Positions 35,146-62,086 of a stretch of 64,000 nt of DNA are shown here, piece after piece. The position numbers were made by a program, and so were the translations under genes. The notes under the pieces were generated by a model. It had not been told where the DNA came from and did no database searches. It saw only the letters and a list, made by a program, of their open reading frames with translations. Positions within the stretch are counted from its first letter, which is position 1. Each line of letters opens with the position of its first letter. The DNA is taken from positions 62,001 through 126,000 of the IMG/VR virus record IMGVR_UViG_3300028840_005860, one strand, 5' to 3'.

Positions 35146-35679
35146 ATGAGCACAAAAGTCCCAACCTGCAAGGTGTGTGGAGAGACGGACCCAGCGAAAC
35201 TGGTGAAAATCTCCAGAAATAGACGCCCTTACTACAGAGGATGGTGCGTTCCCTGTTACAGCGCATACCGGAAAGAGTGGAACAGACGAAATCCAGAACG
35301 AGCGAAGGCGACGTGGGCTCGAGCCCACGAGCGTCAGAAGAAGAAACGGAGGCAAGGACAGGACACCGCCCGGTTTATCTGGGTCGATTCACGAAGATCC
35401 GACAAGAAACGAGGATTCAAAAACGACCTGACCAAAGAGTTCATCGCGGAGCAGATCACCAAAGGTTGCTCGTACTGCGGGGAGAAAACGATCCGCATGA
35501 CGCTCGACCGCATCGACAACGAACGAGGACACACGACGGACAACGTCGTGCCCGCGTGCATCCGGTGCAACCACATCCGTGGGAACATGCCCTACGAAGC
35601 ATGGCTCTGTTTTAGGGCAGCGTTGCGGCGGGCGCGACGGGAGGGGTTATTCGGGAACTGGACTGGAAGAACTAGATAA
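35146..35679 (+). mobile_element. free-standing HNH-type homing endonuclease
   Basis: CKVC...CVPC; CSYCGE...LDRIDN..GH...NVVPACIRCN; lower GC; lies between Leu tRNAs. Confidence 0.85.
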
Positions 35680-43964: not shown

Positions 43965-44711
43965 GCGGAACTCCTCTCATCTCCTGCACGGACTTCGGGA
44001 AGATTTTACACGCGCATGTCGCGCAGGCGCCTGGCCCGGTTACCGACGCGTGCGGTGAAGCCCGTAGGAGGTGGCCCAACCCGAGCCGGCTGCGAACGCG
44101 GTGAAGAGGAGCCAGTCGCGGACGTCCTCGAAACCGAGGCAGAGGCCCGCGAAGGCCCACAGCAGGACGAAGGGAACGGACATGAGAACGCGAAACTCCA
44201 TCCCTACTCTCCCTGGGCCGTCCTCGCTAGCTTGCGAACTCTCTGAAGGAACTCGTCTCCAAACCACACCACCTCCAGGGTGTTGCCGTGGCCCCGATCG
44301 ACGATCCAGATGCAGATCTGTTCCCACTCGTCGGCGTCTTCGGGATCGGTGTAGACGGTGACGACGATTTTGCCGTGAGTTTCCAGGTCTCGTTTCCAGG
44401 CCCACAGCAAGTCGTTCGTGGGGAGATTGTCAGGCCCGACTACCTCGGTGTAGAAGTCACCCATGCCGAGTTCGACTCGCTCCAAGCCGAGCTTGCGGAT
44501 CAACCCCGCGAGTGCTTCGCATCCCGCGTCGCGGATGTGTTCCCACCGACCCGTCCAGCGTTCGGCGTACAGGATCTCGTGGTTCCTGGGGCGCCTCACG
44601 GCGTGGCACGTCTCCTGAGCTGGGAGAGTCGCTCGTAGGTCGCTCTGGAGATGACCCATGACGGCACCTGACCGTCTTCGTGGTCGTAAGCCATGACGAT
44701 GACGCGCCTGG

Positions 44712-45467
44712 TCACAGCGGCTTCGTGATGTCGACCACGAGTTCGTCGTTCTCGATCTCGCAGGCGAACACGTCACCGTGGTTGAACTGCCCGGAGCCTG
44801 CCTTCGGGAACAGCACGCGGCCTCGGGTCTGGGACACGTCGTAGTCCACGGCGCCGGTCACCTGCTCGAGTGCCAGGACGGCCTTGTCGTAGTCGGGCTC
44901 GGGTCCCTCGAAGCGTACCCAGACCTTGTCACCCGCGCGGAACGGACGGCCGAGTGCGTGGAGCAGGCCCTCGAGCGCGGCTCGAGGGACGCAGAGGCGG
45001 TGGTCGGCGTGGACCGTCGCCTTCATGTCGGCCGGGGACGGCGGCTTCGCCGGGACCTGGGCGTTCGGCTGGATGGGGTGCTCCTGGGGCATCTGGGTCA
45101 GGCCCGCACCCGGCTTCGGGATGTCGAGTTCGAACGGGAAGTCCTCGGCCTCGTCCTGCTCCGCCGCGTAGGTGAAGACGGGCTGGCCCGCGGGCGTGCG
45201 CCCTAGCCCGACGCAGGTGCGCGTGACCTGGACCGCGGGCGTCCCGTTGTAGACGATCTGCCCGTTGTAGAAGAGGTCCTGGCACTTCTCGCCGATCCAC
45301 TCCTGCTTGAACACGAACTCGGGCCGGTAGACCCGGAGGATGGTGGTGACGTGCCCGGACGTGAACGGCTGTCCGAGCTGCGTAGTGGCCTCGATGAAGT
45401 CCTCGACGGCCTGTTGCCAGTCGGCCGATCTCTCGACGGCCGCCTTGAGCACCTGTTCGTTCTGCAT
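44712..45467 (-). CDS. hypothetical protein, possibly with a C-terminal AbrB/SpoVT-like barrel
   Basis: ATVHADHRLCVPR motif; same strand as the PARP. Confidence 0.65.
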   Translation of the reverse strand: MQNEQVLKAAVERSADWQQAVEDFIEATTQLGQPFTSGHVTTILRVYRPEFVFKQEWIGEKCQDLFYNGQIVYNGTPAVQVTRTCVGLGRTPAGQPVFTYAAEQDEAEDFPFELDIPKPGAGLTQMPQEHPIQPNAQVPAKPPSPADMKATVHADHRLCVPRAALEGLLHALGRPFRAGDKVWVRFEGPEPDYDKAVLALEQVTGAVDYDVSQTRGRVLFPKAGSGQFNHGDVFACEIENDELVVDITKPL

Positions 45468-45585
45468 GGTTCGTTTTCTCCTCGTTGCCTTGGTCGCCTG
45501 ACTCGGGCGGTGGGTTCTGCTCGTTGTAAGTCCAGGCTGCTTTACCTTGGATATGGGTTATACTTCACGATAGACGCGTCCTGAC

Positions 45586-46836
45586 TTGGATGAGGTCTTG
45601 GAGCGGCGTTTACCGAAGGATCGCCCCGGTTCTTTTGTCGGCCGTCGCTTCGGTAAACTTGTCGTGATTGCGGAGTTCGCGGGCAAGAAGTATGCGTTTG
45701 CTCCGCAGTGTCTGTGTCGGTGTGACTGCGGGAAAGAGCACTGGGTCGTTCGGGGCAACCTCGTGCGTACAAAGAGCTGTGGGTGTGGACGCCGTCCCAA
45801 TCTCGTGGGACGTAGGTTTGGAAACCTCGTTGTCGGGCGCCCCATGCCGCGCAGAACAAAGTCGGGACGCAAGCAGACGGCCTACGCTTGTCGCTGTGAC
45901 TGCGGAAAGGAGACGACCGTGTATCCCGGCGCGTTGCGGTCTGGAGAGACGGTCAGCTGTGGTTGCGTGCGAGAGATGCGATGGGCAGCTTCTCGGATTC
46001 CTACCGGGCGGCGGTTCGGTCGCCTTGAAGTGCTGGAACGTGTGCGCCGGGACGGACATCCCGGGTGGTTCTATCGATGTCGCTGTGACTGTGGAAAACA
46101 GACTATCGTCGACGGCGTCGCGCTGAAGAGAGGCGCCACGCGGAGCTGCGGGTGTCTTCGAGACGAGGTCGCTAGCCTTCCTGACGGAGAGGCCATGCGT
46201 AACGCGATCTTTTCGGGATACCGCAAGAACGCCCGAAAGAGGAACCTGCGGTTTGAGTTGGGCTTGGAGGAGGCTGGGTCTTTGTTTCAGGGGACCTGTC
46301 ACTACTGTGGCAGCCCTCCTCAGATGCGTAGCCATGCAACGGTGCGTGGAGGATACGCGGCGAACGGGATTGATCGTCCTGATAACTCCTCGGGTTACAT
46401 TCCGGGAAACATGGTTTCGTGCTGCACGATCTGTAACTTGGCAAAGGGCACGAAATCCGTGGAAGGTTTCCTGCGATGGGTTCGTCGTGTCGCGTATTTC
46501 GCGGCGACGTCGCCCATTCTCGTGCACGGAAAGCGCGAGACAGCGAAAGACCGACGCAGATTGTCGAAATACAAGGAAGGCGCTCGTGGGCGACGACTTG
46601 CCTTTGAGCTGACAGACGACCTTGCGATCGTGCTCCTGCATTCGCCCTGCACGTACTGTGGTCGGATGCCTGGTAACGGAATCGATAGGATCGATAACTC
46701 GAGAGGTTACGAGCCCGACAACGTTGTGCCATGCTGCGCGGTCTGCAATCGGGCGAAGATCTCGCTTTCCGTAGAGTGCTTCTTCGCTTGGGCTCGGCGT
46801 CTCGTAGCGCATCAGACGGAGATCTCCAACAGATAG
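45586..46836 (+). mobile_element. homing endonuclease with four G.RFG.L.V...C.CDCG repeats and two tandem HNH-like domains
   Basis: Repeats visible in the translation; CHYCG...GIDRPDN..GY...N.V.CC.ICN and CTYCG...GIDRIDN..GY...NVVPCC.VCN; lower GC; antisense to its neighbours. Confidence 0.85.
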
Positions 46837-48455
46837 CGCAACCTGTGGCTCGGCCCCTTCGTGGTTCCGAAGACCACGTGCTCGTCGTTGACGAGGGAGG
46901 CACAGTGACGGTTCGTCGCGTAAATGCTGTCGAACCCCCTCGGGCAGCCATAGAGGCTCCACGCCTTCTTAGCCATGTAGGGTTTGCCGAGCACGACGTC
47001 TCCCATGAACATGAAGGCTCCCCGCCCTCGTATGGCTCCCGCGCCGGAAGAGTACAGTCCCGAACCTATCGAGCAGTAGTTCGCGGCCTTGCGAAAGTCC
47101 GACGCCCAGTAGATTCCGTGCCCGAACGCCGCCCCCGTGATGTGGACGCCCTTCAAAGACTTGGGGAGACGCAGGTCGGTCTGCAGGATCGGAGCCACGT
47201 TCACCGAGCGCGTTCCGTGGAACAGGAGAGCCATGTTCGCTCGCTCGTAGAGATCTGCGATGTCCGAGACGTCGTGTCGCTCGTCCGGCTGCATGTCGGC
47301 CTGCTCGTGATTCCCTTTGCGGACCGACGCGACGTGCTTGGCCCCCGCGACGAAGAGGTCGTCCACTCGAGAACGCCGAATGACGAACGCATTGAGGACG
47401 CGCACGTCTCCGATGTTTCTGTGTCGGTCCTTGGACATCCTCGTGAAGGTCTCGACCACCCACTTCCCGCGCCCGCTCTTCATGTCGAGCCACTCGATCT
47501 CCGCCTTCAGCGCGGCGTTCGGATCGATCTGCTGCTCCTCCTGGACCTCGACCTCCCAGTCCTCGTTCTTCAGCGCGGCCTCGAACGCGTCGAGGTCCTG
47601 CTGCACGAGGAGGATGTTGGTCGAGTTCAGGATGACGGCGGACGGGTCTCCGCCACGAGGGATGGGTCTCGGCACGATGGTCGCGACGTAGGTCGAGAGC
47701 TCCTGGAGCTTCTTGTCCCTGAGCTGGCGGTCGTGGTCGTCACCGATCCGTTTGATCATCGCGAGGGCCTGCGGGATGAGGTCGTCGCGGACCTCGGTGA
47801 TCGCCTCCATGGTGGGGGTGACGCCCGACGCCCTGGAGGCCGCGCGGGCGTAGTCGGCGGTGCCTCCGACGAGCGACTTCGCGAGCGCGATGACCTGCGG
47901 CTGCGCGTCGATCTTCTTCTTGGAGGTCTTCTTCTTGGTGGCTTTCTTCTTGGCCTTCTTCTTCTCGACGCCGCTGTCGTCCTTGATCAGGCATGCGTCG
48001 GGGAGCCCGCGCTCGCGGGTCGCGAGGCGCTGGACGACGTATCCGTCCTTGCCGGACTTGCCGACCCAGATCTCCTTGCCGCCGACCTTCTTCTGCTGGA
48101 GCCGCTTGATGTTCTTGCTGCGGCACTGCTTCTCGAAGAACGTGCGGGCGTCATCCTCTCCGCTGCACGTGACGAACTGGAAGTCTTGCCCTCGGAAGGA
48201 GCCGTCCCAGGTCTTGCCTCCGCCGCTGACTCGTCCCCACTCGAGGTAGACGTACCAGGCTCCGTCCTGGCGCACGACCCCGGCGTGGTAGTACTTGTTG
48301 TTGTTCGCGTCCCCGAACTGGTTGACGCAGACCATGTCCGCGATCCCCACCTCGGATCCGAAGTCGTCCTGGTCGACCGCGGGGCGACCCTGGTACTTGA
48401 AGTCGTCCGCCGAGCAGCCCGACGGCATCTCTTTCCTGCCGAGTTTGACAGCCAT
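46812..48455 (-). CDS. poly(ADP-ribose) polymerase-like protein (WGR + helical + ART catalytic domain)
   Basis: NNNKYY...YLEWGRV (WGR); LLFHGT, FGHGIYWAS..KAANY, VVLGK and NDEHVVF give the H-Y-E triad. Confidence 0.9.
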   Translation of the reverse strand: MAVKLGRKEMPSGCSADDFKYQGRPAVDQDDFGSEVGIADMVCVNQFGDANNNKYYHAGVVRQDGAWYVYLEWGRVSGGGKTWDGSFRGQDFQFVTCSGEDDARTFFEKQCRSKNIKRLQQKKVGGKEIWVGKSGKDGYVVQRLATRERGLPDACLIKDDSGVEKKKAKKKATKKKTSKKKIDAQPQVIALAKSLVGGTADYARAASRASGVTPTMEAITEVRDDLIPQALAMIKRIGDDHDRQLRDKKLQELSTYVATIVPRPIPRGGDPSAVILNSTNILLVQQDLDAFEAALKNEDWEVEVQEEQQIDPNAALKAEIEWLDMKSGRGKWVVETFTRMSKDRHRNIGDVRVLNAFVIRRSRVDDLFVAGAKHVASVRKGNHEQADMQPDERHDVSDIADLYERANMALLFHGTRSVNVAPILQTDLRLPKSLKGVHITGAAFGHGIYWASDFRKAANYCSIGSGLYSSGAGAIRGRGAFMFMGDVVLGKPYMAKKAWSLYGCPRGFDSIYATNRHCASLVNDEHVVFGTTKGPSHRLRYLLEISV

Positions 48456-48623
48456 GTTTTCCTCCGGGTCCTCTGTCCGGGTCTGTGACTTGGAGCTGAC
48501 CGCTCACGGGTTATACTCCCTCGGGGCTCGGACCGAGGAGCCGTCGGCGTAGAACGAGAGAGGGTCCCCTCCTCCTCAGGAGGGGGTCGTTCGGACGCGC
48601 TGTTCGCGCGCAGGAGGATCACC

Positions 48624-49391
48624 ATGGCGGATCGCTGCCCAGAATGCTCGAACGTATTGCCCGACCACGCGAGCTGGTGTTCACGTTTCCCTGACGGCGT
48701 GCCGCATCCCGACGGTTTCGGAGGGTCCGACGAGGAGTCGCATTACATGTCACAGAAGCGCATCACGACCAAGGAAGAATTCGAGGCCGAGTACGGCGAC
48801 TTCGATCCGTCTCGCGAGCCCACGTTACTTCGCGAGCGTCTGGACGGTTCTCTTGCCCGCGTGATGTCGGAACGTCGAGGTCCGTCCAAGCTGGACGAGA
48901 TGATCGAGGCCGAGCGGGCCGTAGTGGGTCCCACCCCGGAGCAGGAGGCCGCGATGAAACGCGATGTGGAGCAACAGCTCGGGCCGAAACAGGTCCTCGT
49001 GGTGCGCACCGACCTCCAGATGCGCAAGGGCAAAATGGTCTCGCAGGGGGCTCACGCGAGCGGCAAGGTCTTCTTCGACACCATCCCCCGCGAGGCGCTT
49101 GAGGTCGGGTTCCCCGAAGGCTTCGAGCGCGTCAGGGTGACTCTCGAGCTGGACAGGTCGATGTTCATGTGGCTCGCCGGCATCTTCACGAAAATCTGTT
49201 GCCGCGTCGACTCCGAGGACGAGCTCCTCGAGATCTACGAGAAGGCCACGACGGCCGGGCTCCCGTGCGTCCTCATCGAGGACAGGGGCCTCACCGAGTT
49301 CGGCGGCGTCCCGACCAAGACGTGCTGCGCCATCGGGCCGGCACCGCCCGAGGAGGTCGACCCCATCACCGGACACCTCAAATTGCTGTAG
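48624..49391 (+). CDS. pth2: peptidyl-tRNA hydrolase, Pth2 type, with N-terminal extension
   Basis: KQVLVVRTDL.M.KGK...QGAHAS; KI...V.SE.EL; I.D.G.TE...T.TCCAIGP...EVD.ITG.LKLL. Confidence 0.9.
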   Translation: MADRCPECSNVLPDHASWCSRFPDGVPHPDGFGGSDEESHYMSQKRITTKEEFEAEYGDFDPSREPTLLRERLDGSLARVMSERRGPSKLDEMIEAERAVVGPTPEQEAAMKRDVEQQLGPKQVLVVRTDLQMRKGKMVSQGAHASGKVFFDTIPREALEVGFPEGFERVRVTLELDRSMFMWLAGIFTKICCRVDSEDELLEIYEKATTAGLPCVLIEDRGLTEFGGVPTKTCCAIGPAPPEEVDPITGHLKLL

Positions 49392-49401
49392 GAACGAAAC
49401 C

Positions 49402-49743
49402 ATGTCCGACAAGCCAGCCGTCGTCGCCCAACAGGTGGTCCCCCTGGCCAGGGCCTTTCGTACTCCGGCGCCGTGCGAGCGTCCCCGATCGAGACCCGTG
49501 GCCGAGGGCCGGGTGGAACTCCAACCCTTCGGGAACCGAACCGAGAAGGTTGCCTGGGTCGTCTGGGCTCGGGTGTTCGAGCCCGACGCCGCGCACCTCA
49601 AGGACCCCACCGTGTGGACGCGTCTCGCGGAGATCAAGGTCGAGTTCTCCGGGCGCGGTTTCAAGAGGCGCCTCGCCGAGGCGAAGGAGAAGGCGGTGAC
49701 CATCCTGCTCGCCCACGAGGGCGTGCCTCCCGAACAGTGGTAG
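49402..49743 (+). CDS. hypothetical protein
   Basis: ORF track. Confidence 0.6.
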   Translation: MSDKPAVVAQQVVPLARAFRTPAPCERPRSRPVAEGRVELQPFGNRTEKVAWVVWARVFEPDAAHLKDPTVWTRLAEIKVEFSGRGFKRRLAEAKEKAVTILLAHEGVPPEQW

Positions 49744-57180: not shown

Positions 57181-58068
57181 TCAGCTCGCGGAGGCCAGGA
57201 GCCAACGTCGCGCGACCCGTCGTGTCATCTCGTGCCCGAGGTCGAGCTCGAGGCTCAGCAGCGTGCGCTCCTCGCCGCCCTCGGCCATGTGCTCCTTGGC
57301 CCCCGTCGTCCCGGGCTGTGACGGACGGGTCGGCCTGCCGGCGCTCATCCACTGGCGGAACCGCCTGCGGACGAGCTCGGCGAACCGGGGGTCGCTCTTG
57401 ATCAGGTAGTCGGCCCTGACGGTCGGATGCTGGTCGCGGCTCTCAGCGTTCGTGTTGGGGACCTGCTTCGCGCCGCCGTCGAACATGACGTCCATGAACT
57501 TGTCCCACGTGCGCTCGGCCTTCGCCTCTTCGATGTAGTGCGGGTGGAACTGGAAGCCCTCCTCCTCGGCGGCCCGCTGGAAGTCGCGGAGGTGCGACTC
57601 GCGGTCCTCGTAGAAGTGGATCTTCCTCGCGTGAGGGGTCTCGTCCATGATCCGCTTCATCTCGCGGATCTTGTAGGGCCTCGTCTGCTCCTTCTTCTGC
57701 TTGAGGACGAGCTCGTCGGGCTCGCCCACCTGGGAGAGCAGCTCGAGGATCTTGTCGCGGAAGGGTTCGGACCGGCCCGTGATGACGACCACCTTGGCGC
57801 GCGGGTTCTTCTTCGCCTTGCGGTATTCGTCGATGACGCGCTGGACGTACCAGTTCTGGTTTGGGTCAGACGGGACCAGAGGGTCGGCGAGCGATTGCGG
57901 ATCGTGCCAGAAGCTCCCGTGCTGGCTCTTCGGGACGTCGGGAGGAGGCCCTGGACTGTGGAAGATCGTGTGATCGAAGTCGAAGAAGTGCACCTCGGTC
58001 TTCGGCCCGGTCTCCTGGCGCTCGCGCTTCTTCCTGGTGGGCGCGCGTCTGGCAGATCGCAGGAACAT
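57181..58068 (-). CDS. Swiss-Army-Knife RNA-repair-like HAD phosphatase
   Basis: FFDFDHTIFHSP; VVITGRSE; LVLK...T..YK; FYEDRESH. Confidence 0.7.
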   Translation of the reverse strand: MFLRSARRAPTRKKRERQETGPKTEVHFFDFDHTIFHSPGPPPDVPKSQHGSFWHDPQSLADPLVPSDPNQNWYVQRVIDEYRKAKKNPRAKVVVITGRSEPFRDKILELLSQVGEPDELVLKQKKEQTRPYKIREMKRIMDETPHARKIHFYEDRESHLRDFQRAAEEEGFQFHPHYIEEAKAERTWDKFMDVMFDGGAKQVPNTNAESRDQHPTVRADYLIKSDPRFAELVRRRFRQWMSAGRPTRPSQPGTTGAKEHMAEGGEERTLLSLELDLGHEMTRRVARRWLLASAS

Positions 58069-58171: not shown

Positions 58172-58447
58172 CTAGGCTGCCTTGCGCGTCCGCGAGGGCA
58201 CCTTCCTGGTGGCCGGCTTCTTCCTGGCCGTGGCCTTCTTCTTCGGCGTGGTCTTGCGCGCCTTGGTCCGGTTGATCTTCTTCCTGGCCGTCGGCTTCTT
58301 GGCGGTCTTCTTCCTGGCCGTCGGCTTCTTGGCGGTCTTCTTCTTGGCGCGCGAGCTCGACGCCTTCTTCTTCGCGCGGGGCTTTGGGGTCTTCTTGGCC
58401 GTCGGCTTCTTCCCCGTCGGCTTCTTCGTCTTCGATCCGGTTGGCAT
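58172..58447 (-). CDS. histone H1-like (Hc2/AlgP-like) basic protein
   Basis: K/A/T/R/P-rich with repeated KKTAKKPTAR. Confidence 0.75.
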   Translation of the reverse strand: MPTGSKTKKPTGKKPTAKKTPKPRAKKKASSSRAKKKTAKKPTARKKTAKKPTARKKINRTKARKTTPKKKATARKKPATRKVPSRTRKAA

Positions 58448-61740: not shown

Positions 61741-62086
61741 GAGGACCAGGTGGGCCCAGTGCCACCTCGAGCGCCGCACGGAGATCGGGACCGAGGAGAC
61801 GACGTCCTGGTTCCCGGTCCGACACGCGAGGGTCGGGAACTCGGTCGAGCTCAAAAGAGGCGACGGAGAGTGGACGACGGGCTGGATCGTGAGGCGGGCC
61901 CGGCCCGAGGTCGACGAACCCCCCGACTGGAGGAAGGCGATCAGACAGCACAGACACCGAACGGGAGACGACAGACCCAAGCAACGAAAGGAAGAGTGAA
62001 TTGGGAGCGGCAAACGAAAAGGAAGGGGCGGCAGGAACCTCGAGAACCTTCGCGTCTCGGGACACACCGAGGACGACCGTCCGGTC

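Follow-up and report, generated by a model that had tools for sequence, protein, structure and literature searches.

We analysed a 64,000-nucleotide stretch of viral DNA—positions 62,001 to 126,000 of IMG/VR record IMGVR_UViG_3300028840_005860, hereafter the window—and found that it encodes a full-length PARP-family protein together with a second, co-oriented gene that accompanies it across most of its closer relatives. The PARP gene (46812-48455, minus strand; 547 amino acids, with the stop codon included in the coordinates) specifies a protein with a predicted WGR domain, a helical domain, and an ADP-ribosyltransferase (ART) domain, and the partner gene (44712-45467, minus strand; 251 amino acids, preceded by a GAGGAG Shine-Dalgarno sequence) lies on its 3' side, the two being separated by an open reading frame (ORF) that resembles HNH homing endonucleases (45586-46836, plus strand; 416 amino acids). 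Our preferred reading, to which we assign a probability of about 0.6, is that the PARP would be gated by nucleic-acid breaks and would work with the partner as one module.

The window is identical in sequence to part of a 230-kb IMG/VR contig, which upholds the phage origin claimed by an original prediction made from the DNA letters; other assemblies of the same phage genome measure 235-237 kb, and the genome around the PARP locus has a GC content of 65%. The PHROG families matched by ORFs of the window include one for a structural protein of the virion, one for a translation elongation factor, and others of the peptidase/endolysin type, and megablast of 44000-49500 and of 1-25000 found no DNA-level resemblance to cultured phages. 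Across 44000-48129, contigs from three runs belonging to three separate studies (sediment and seawater metagenomes) show zero differences, and because identical DNA was recovered in all three, the PARP locus is not an assembly artefact. GC content at third codon positions (GC3) is 0.89 for the PARP gene and 0.92 for the partner gene, the codon signature of the surrounding genome. A scan for promoters and terminators in 44100-48800 gave no excess over chance.

The ART domain of the PARP (approximately residues 319-547; 46815-47501, minus strand) carries H413, Y449, K456, Y460, and E525. Within it, residues 405-519 match the Pfam PARP catalytic domain PF00644 (E=1.2e-16; 61.2 bits against a cutoff of 26.7), and PDB sequence searches returned the catalytic domains of PARP1, PARP2, PARP3, and PARP4. 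In an alignment of 36 family members with 53-71% identity to the window PARP, H413, Y449, K456, Y460, and E525 do not vary, and the motifs around them (H413-G-T, G447-x-Y449, N-D-E525) are fully or almost fully conserved; these motifs align to HGS, GIYFA, K-S-A-N-Y, and Y-N-E of PARP1. Because the motifs are both conserved and aligned to PARP1, we consider the H-Y-E triad (H413, Y449, E525) and the rest of the NAD+ pocket to be intact, in agreement with the original prediction.

The same prediction had described a full-length WGR-helical-ART protein, and this too is supported, by the Pfam PARP match for the catalytic part and by structural modelling for the remainder. The predicted WGR domain (approximately residues 20-157; 47985-48398, minus strand) occupies the N-terminal third, where an E72-W73-G74-R75 motif accompanies a conserved N-x-x-K-x-Y stretch (N51, K54, Y56). 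It is followed by a lysine-rich, low-complexity linker (approximately residues 163-184; 47904-47969, minus strand), predicted to be disordered with a per-residue model confidence (pLDDT) of 53-61; the linker is rich in lysine in close relatives too, and its DNA draws unrelated metagenome contigs in matching. Next comes the helical, PARP_reg-like domain (approximately residues 186-316; 47508-47900, minus strand), with modelled helices at 186-297. At the level of curated profiles, Pfam WGR is sub-threshold in the window PARP (E=3.1), with a PF05406 match precomputed for two family members, and Pfam PARP_reg gave no match; a weak sequence match nonetheless links query residues 248-346 to the helical-domain motif of PARP3 (residues 73-176). 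An AlphaFold2 model built on the family alignment reached a pLDDT of 82 and a predicted template-modelling score (pTM) of 0.80. Compared by Foldseek, this model aligned over ~570 columns with DNA-bound WGR-catalytic chains of PARP1 (8g0h, 7s6h, 4dqy) and with PARP2 (6x0l) at E~1e-19, and it attained template-modelling (TM) scores of 0.65-0.69 against PARP1 chains comprising the helical and ART domains. Residues 1-165 searched alone led to WGR clusters in the ESM Atlas (feature score 0.88, 187 shared features), with TM scores of 0.70-0.71 to WGR-only proteins when normalised to those proteins. On this predicted structure, the order WGR, helical domain, ART in the window PARP is real.

We searched for the partner gene with a hidden Markov model (HMM) of its 251-residue product, covering 28 non-redundant loci that encode a PARP with 42% identity or more to the window PARP. 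A homologue lies 3' of the PARP gene on the same strand in 26 of them, as expected from the earlier suggestion that this gene is a likely partner, and the loci with the pair belong both to huge phages, with GC contents of 35-64%, and to chromosomes of myxobacteria of the family Nannocystaceae; in many of these loci, the partner gene directly abuts the PARP stop codon or overlaps it. In three viral loci (L004, L008, and L071), the partner start overlaps the PARP stop codon by 1-4 nucleotides; the Nannocystaceae genomes without exception have the two genes side by side, flanked by unrelated housekeeping genes. A wider search recovered 73 partner homologues, mostly on contigs that also encode the PARP, and because 27 contigs of equal size occur in both match lists, we conclude that the two genes travel together. 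Residues R90, E113, and R162 of the partner are invariant. At the sequence level, these comparisons demonstrate strong purifying conservation of the PARP across hundreds of relatives and a co-oriented partner that is hard-wired to it.

What the partner does is suggested by synteny and by its predicted fold, which was modelled with high confidence (pLDDT 94). Residues 14-106 resemble winged-helix models of the BlaI, RepA, Fur, PadR, and MarR types in the ESM Atlas (TM 0.4-0.66), a weak lead to a winged-helix N-terminal half, whereas residues 145-251 resemble models of MazE, MraZ, and SymE, members of the AbrB swapped-hairpin superfamily (TM 0.5-0.58). In the model, a beta-beta-alpha-beta-beta unit occurs twice in this C-terminal half, as in MraZ, so that a tandem AbrB/MraZ-like arrangement is plausible but not established. 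The original prediction had called the C-terminus AbrB-like; the TM scores of 0.5-0.58 to MazE and MraZ models speak for it, the protein has no Pfam match, and we retain the idea as a lead only. Searches of the partner against Pfam (E<=10), NCBIfam, and PADLOC gave no match, a profile of the partner found none among PDB sequences, and neither the PARP nor the partner matches the anti-phage defence profiles of PADLOC. In a more distant clade, the co-oriented gene 3' of the PARP in locus L022 has a MazE_antitoxin match that falls below threshold (E=6.5e-4), and profile-profile comparison of the partner family with the downstream genes yielded a weak full-length alignment in L022 (E=0.06) and a 19-residue match in L023; these alignments are too weak for a partner to be claimed in that clade.

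The ORF between the two genes matches HNH endonuclease PHROGs (phrog_374, E=6e-39) and has no Pfam match. It runs convergently with the PARP gene, its stop lying 25 nucleotides inside the PARP 3' end, and encodes three CxCxCGK repeats followed by two HNH-like modules in tandem duplication. Its GC3 of 0.65 contrasts with ~0.9 in its neighbours. Homologues with 55-57% identity sit at exactly the same site, on the strand opposite and 3' of the PARP gene, in L003 and in L010/L011/L015/L020, while L019 retains a 49-residue HNH remnant there and L001/L007 have none—altogether, the pattern of a homing endonuclease that targets the PARP-partner junction. The PARP and partner genes were probably once adjacent and parted by the HNH gene later, as originally proposed, because the HNH gene is a compositional outlier and sporadic at this site and because the flanking genes abut or overlap elsewhere (L004, L008, L071, and the Nannocystaceae). 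The best explanation of these comparisons is that the HNH gene is a selfish later insertion that does not belong to the PARP-partner module. No HNH-free variant was seen in the three runs holding the sequence, in which the HNH-bearing contigs match at 100%. A public annotation instead has a 400-residue ORF between the PARP and the partner on their own strand, opposite the HNH gene (45610-46812, minus strand, equivalent to L073:11644-12846); we regard it as a probable mis-call because the plus-strand HNH reading has both PHROG matches and protein-level homologues. Elsewhere in the window, a short HNH-like segment in the tRNA region (35425-35607) shares 36% identity with the C-terminal one of the HNH modules in the inserted ORF.

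The PARP family is large. At 90% identity, a word-indexed search gave at least 600 clusters, almost all of them 536-566 amino acids long and many on contigs of 140-618 kb, and an exhaustive search gave 62 clusters at 50% identity with E<1e-30. IMG/VR holds 19 family loci on contigs of up to 618 kb, the contigs that speak for a phage setting of the relatives measure 222-618 kb, and across the 14 viral and genomic loci measured GC content ranges from 27 to 72% (27-64% for viral contigs). Matches in cultured phages (Xanthomonas XacN1 and phages of Klebsiella and Stenotrophomonas) cover the catalytic third and nothing more, at 30-34% identity; the sole full-length match in INPHARED is an unannotated 595-kb metagenomic phage with 36% identity. 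Full-length homologues with 47-49% identity occur in GTDB genomes of three Enhygromyxa salina strains, Plesiocystis pacifica SIR-1, and Nannocystaceae ST9, and further family members in several metagenome-assembled genomes (MAGs). Full-length members were also seen on large contigs binned with a Woesearchaeota MAG (L037/L038), a Bacteriovoracaceae MAG (L041, 546 kb), and an Isosphaeraceae MAG (L039), contigs that may be mis-binned pieces of huge phages. In a maximum-likelihood tree, with the clade of 34-39% identity as outgroup, the Nannocystaceae PARPs form one clade (support 100/100) that sits among viral sequences, and L001/L007 are sister to the window. This topology fits a single exchange between phages and Nannocystaceae, in either direction. 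The Nannocystaceae loci (L027-L036) have 68-72% GC and come from marine habitats, and relatives of marine Nannocystaceae are a possibility as hosts of the window's phage.

We propose a mechanism whose activation steps are modelled on PARP1, PARP2, and the bacterial enzyme HaPARP. A jumbo phage of ~230-237 kb would carry a PARP1-3-type ADP-ribosyltransferase in which the helical domain would hold the ART off; binding of the WGR domain to a break in nucleic acid (a DNA nick or end carrying a 5' phosphate being the likeliest) would release this block, and the released ART would use NAD+ to ADP-ribosylate itself and nearby targets. Judging from synteny and the fold leads, the DNA-binding-like partner would act with the PARP as a dedicated DNA-bound substrate, effector, or targeting subunit, and the two genes would form a break-sensing module that serves, during infection, to maintain the phage genome or to signal damage. 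The parts of this model differ in strength. That the window PARP is an active, nucleic-acid-gated ART seems probable to us, and a functional link between partner and PARP is quite probable; whether the partner would then serve as substrate, effector, or targeting subunit is guesswork. For polymer rather than mono-ADP-ribose as the product, we would give odds at or slightly below even, because PARP3 and PARP4 keep the H-Y-E triad and because the family profile marginally favours PARP4. A bolder version, which we think unlikely, is that the PARP and its ~250-residue partner constitute an undescribed two-component break-response switch of huge phages and Nannocystaceae, in which the WGR-gated PARP would ADP-ribosylate the DNA-bound partner and thereby alter transcription or shield DNA ends upon genome cutting. 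If true, the switch would represent prokaryotic or viral PARP signalling with a dedicated accessory factor, loosely like the logic of PARP1-HPF1 or RecA-LexA.

Several observations weigh against the break-gated module. The WGR and helical domains are read from predicted structure, with the curated Pfam models failing or sub-threshold. Possession of H-Y-E is no guarantee of polymer synthesis, for which the triad is necessary and not sufficient: human PARP3 and PARP4 both carry it and yet are mono-ARTs, and PARP4 is, marginally, the best PDB sequence match of the family profile. The partner does not lie within 10 kb of the PARP in two of the 28 loci by HMM search (L014 and L019), and none is detected by the HMM in the distant clade of 34-39% PARP identity. 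Its DNA-binding nature is suggested by leads with TM scores of 0.5-0.66, which are weak, and Foldseek comparison with PDB and BFVD structures returned nothing better than E=0.04. The original prediction had pointed to PARG or macrodomains as genes to look for; among the 65 ORFs of the window, Pfam identified neither PARG nor Macro, and likewise no ADP_ribosyl_GH (ADP-ribosylglycohydrolase, ARH), NUDIX, or NAMPT. Finally, no biochemical support has been reported for any phage PARP.

The surroundings of the PARP gene in relatives show a mosaic of NAD+ and repair functions. In L004 and L071, on contigs of 351-355 kb, the pair sits between a NAMPT-NUDIX group and a UvdE-NUDIX group: on one side (L004:525-5386; L071:5401-8912) are an R2K ATP-grasp protein, NAMPT, and a 305-residue NUDIX protein, with a radical SAM protein in L004, and on the other (L004:8968-10303; L071:12653-14045) UvdE and a second NUDIX protein, an arrangement in which genes for NAD+ salvage directly adjoin the gene of an NAD+ consumer. 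In L072, on a 229-kb contig, genes for an NAD-dependent LigA and an anti-Pycsar Apyc1-like protein lie upstream of the PARP, and a second, short PARP-domain protein of 295 amino acids (L072:11930-12817) stands between the full-length PARP and the partner. The distant loci L022 (8306-21164) and L023 (8983-16262), which share ~37% identity, have the order RNA ligase, PARP, partner-like gene, and AAA ATPase, the last with a proteasomal-ATPase-like OB signal, followed 3-8 kb downstream by an ADP-ribosylglycohydrolase (E=1e-45). An IMG/VR pattern search with these two ARH sequences did not return the window's contig, the patterns having been built from two sequences. In L019, HAD_SAK_2 lies immediately 3', and in L001 a CCA-adding enzyme is nearby. 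Taken together, these settings suit an enzyme that spends NAD+ during the repair of nucleic acids; they are, however, a mosaic and favour neither DNA nor RNA.

In the window itself, the PARP gene lies among 28 tRNA genes arranged in clusters (34145-63544), a phage EF-Tu (37837-39003, plus strand; GTP_EFTU E=5e-56), a HAD_SAK_1 protein of the RNA-repair-type HAD class (57181-58068, minus strand), and a Pth2-domain protein encoded divergently from the PARP (48624-49391, plus strand; Pfam PTH2 E=2e-29), which together form a translation/RNA-repair island around it. The Pth2-domain protein has an N-terminal extension of ~120 amino acids and scores above the curated cutoff of one NCBIfam Pth2 model and below that of the other; its gene is a syntenic neighbour, present in L001 too, rather than an established part of the module. 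Farther away, the ORFs of 1-30800 have Pfam matches to a pyrimidine-dimer DNA glycosylase (E=3e-20) like T4 endonuclease V, to the GmrSD_C nuclease domain, to DUF4031 and DUF433, and to a radical SAM protein, and the window also encodes a pyruvoyl arginine decarboxylase and an M23 peptidase. An H1-like protein had been suggested as a target of the PARP. A basic ORF rich in Lys, Ala, Pro, and Thr does exist on the minus strand (58172-58447; 91 amino acids from an internal Met; GC3 0.96), and its only tie to the PARP is that it lies 10 kb away; an overlapping plus-strand ORF at 58182 is not Lys-rich, and probably only its part from around Met 152 on is genuine.

With these contexts in view, we weighed other accounts of the PARP. 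We reasoned that it might be a PARP3-like mono-ADP-ribosyltransferase that marks proteins, or the 5' or 3' phosphates of DNA ends, and makes no polymer, for instance capping phage DNA ends against host exonucleases. PARP1-3 can indeed ADP-ribosylate DNA ends. The triad is shared with the mono-ARTs PARP3 and PARP4, the latter being the closest sequence match of the family profile, the window has no PARG or macrodomain gene, and the nearby eraser in relatives is an ARH and not PARG; on the other hand, the acceptor/NAD site shows no variation at its Lys and second Tyr across the 36-sequence alignment, and bacterial WGR-PARP_reg-PARP enzymes make long PAR (poly(ADP-ribose)) chains in vitro (PMC4245714, PMC8120803). 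We regard this account as possible, if rather unlikely. The island around the window PARP raises a different prospect, namely that the WGR domain recognises tRNA or other RNA ends cut by host anticodon nucleases and that the ART modifies RNA ends or translation factors. Its position among the 28 tRNAs, Pth2-domain protein, EF-Tu, and HAD_SAK_1, together with the RNA ligase immediately upstream in L022/L023, HAD_SAK_2 downstream in L019, and the CCA-adding enzyme near the gene in L001, would accord with an RNA-break sensor. In other relatives, however, the pair neighbours genes of DNA repair (UvdE, LigA, and pyrimidine-dimer glycosylase), nothing around the Nannocystaceae copies relates to RNA repair, the modelled structure matches PARP1/2 bound to DNA breaks, and jumbo-phage neighbourhoods are mosaic, all of which makes sensing of RNA breaks improbable.

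Still less probable is a break-independent effector of host takeover or counter-defence, which would ADP-ribosylate host RNA polymerase or defence proteins or drain NAD+, a role suggested in general terms for jumbo-phage ARTs. Iyer et al. propose that phage PARPs target host proteins as other phage ARTs do (PMC7824862), and in L072 an anti-Pycsar gene lies near the PARP. Against this, the WGR and the autoinhibitory helical domain are kept family-wide, which argues for ligand-gated activity; Nannocystaceae maintain the pair as an operon on their chromosomes, a setting that offers no host for takeover; and PADLOC finds nothing. The absence of the gene from cultured phages at the DNA level and its close homologues in bacterial chromosomes could also be taken to mean that it is no functional phage gene at all but a cellular gene captured not long ago, a gene in decay, or part of a mis-binned bacterial contig. 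This is largely refuted already, and we give it very little credence: the ORF is intact with phage-typical GC3 and invariant catalytic residues, dozens of relatives reside on IMG/VR contigs of 200-600 kb with 27-64% GC, identical DNA was obtained in three independent runs, and the Nannocystaceae sequences are a single clade nested among viral ones.

The break-gated PARP-partner module would matter for several reasons. The role of PAR-type signalling outside eukaryotes is largely unexplained, and activity assays in the PARP literature that we compared concern two bacterial PARPs and no phage PARP. Here, a PARP family that is large and strictly conserved extends across huge phages of very different hosts, and its tightly linked partner is a concrete first candidate for a substrate or effector. 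The family is also present in culturable marine myxobacteria (Enhygromyxa, Plesiocystis), in which genetics is feasible. NAD+ salvage genes, UvdE, LigA, and ARH near the PARP in relatives suggest a phage-run, NAD+-fuelled circuit of repair or damage signalling. Should gating by DNA breaks prove true, the activation mechanism of PARP1-3 would operate in bacterial viruses, and the debate on the origins of eukaryotic PARPs would be informed.

Phage PARPs as such have been described before. They were reported in 2014 from Aeromonas phage Aeh1 and Cellulophaga phage phi4:1 (PMC4245714), were noted in jumbo phages in 2021 and counted among the commonest viral ART families in 2022, and were proposed in 2024 as DNA-damage sensors in 'NAD-jumbo phages' (PMC7824862, PMC9503650, PMC11662467). 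Given this literature (PMC7824862, PMC9503650, PMC11662467, PMC4245714) and the at least 600 clusters at 90% identity, the rarity and novelty attributed to the protein in the original prediction were overstated; it is a phage PARP of known type, and its novelty is modest. The conserved partner and the homing HNH gene at the junction, by contrast, appear unreported, being mentioned nowhere in the phage and bacterial PARP literature compared in a limited search.

Among known systems, bacterial WGR-PARPs have been catalogued and two of them assayed in vitro (PMC4245714, PMC5966428, PMC8120803): in vitro, PAR is produced by the WGR-PARP_reg-PARP enzymes of both H. aurantiacus and C. difficile, with HaPARP dependent on DNA and forming long chains (PMC8120803, PMC4245714). 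The window PARP resembles these enzymes (HaPARP, CdPARP) in its WGR-helical-ART order, H-Y-E triad, and size class, and differs in being phage-borne, in its Lys-rich linker, and in its pairing with a ~250-residue protein of candidate winged-helix/AbrB-like folds; the systems of H. aurantiacus and C. difficile CD160 also include PARG (PMC8120803), whereas none was found in the 64-kb window. The homologue of P. pacifica SIR-1 (L030), 47% identical over its full length, belongs to the same family as the window PARP and probably corresponds to the P. pacifica entry in the PARP list of Perina et al. 2014 (PMC4245714). Human PARP1 and PARP2 (WGR-catalytic structures 7s6h, 8g0h, 4dqy, and 6x0l) are the best structural matches and have the same NAD-site residues, yet share 17-18% identity with the window PARP, which does not have the zinc fingers, BRCT domain, and N-terminal region; there is no HPF1 homologue, and the fold of the partner is unrelated. 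The jumbo-phage PARPs or PARTs (XacN1, Aeh1, phi4:1, and those of 'NAD-jumbo phages') likewise place a PARP-family ART in a large genome (PMC7824862, PMC9503650, PMC11662467, PMC4245714) and the role hypothesised for them, in repair directed by the phage or in modifying the host, is the same, although the cultured-phage matches cover the catalytic third at 30-34% identity. T4's Alt, ModA, and ModB, as well as DarT, are also NAD+-dependent ARTs of phage-host biology, but they belong to other ART clades (R-S-E or DarT-like), are devoid of the WGR and helical domains, and are mono-ARTs (PMC8120803). The inserted ORF, for its part, is like free-standing phage HNH homing endonucleases in its PHROG match, deviant codon composition, and occupancy of one precise intergenic site in some relatives, and is set apart from them by its duplicated HNH-like module and three CxCxCGK repeats.

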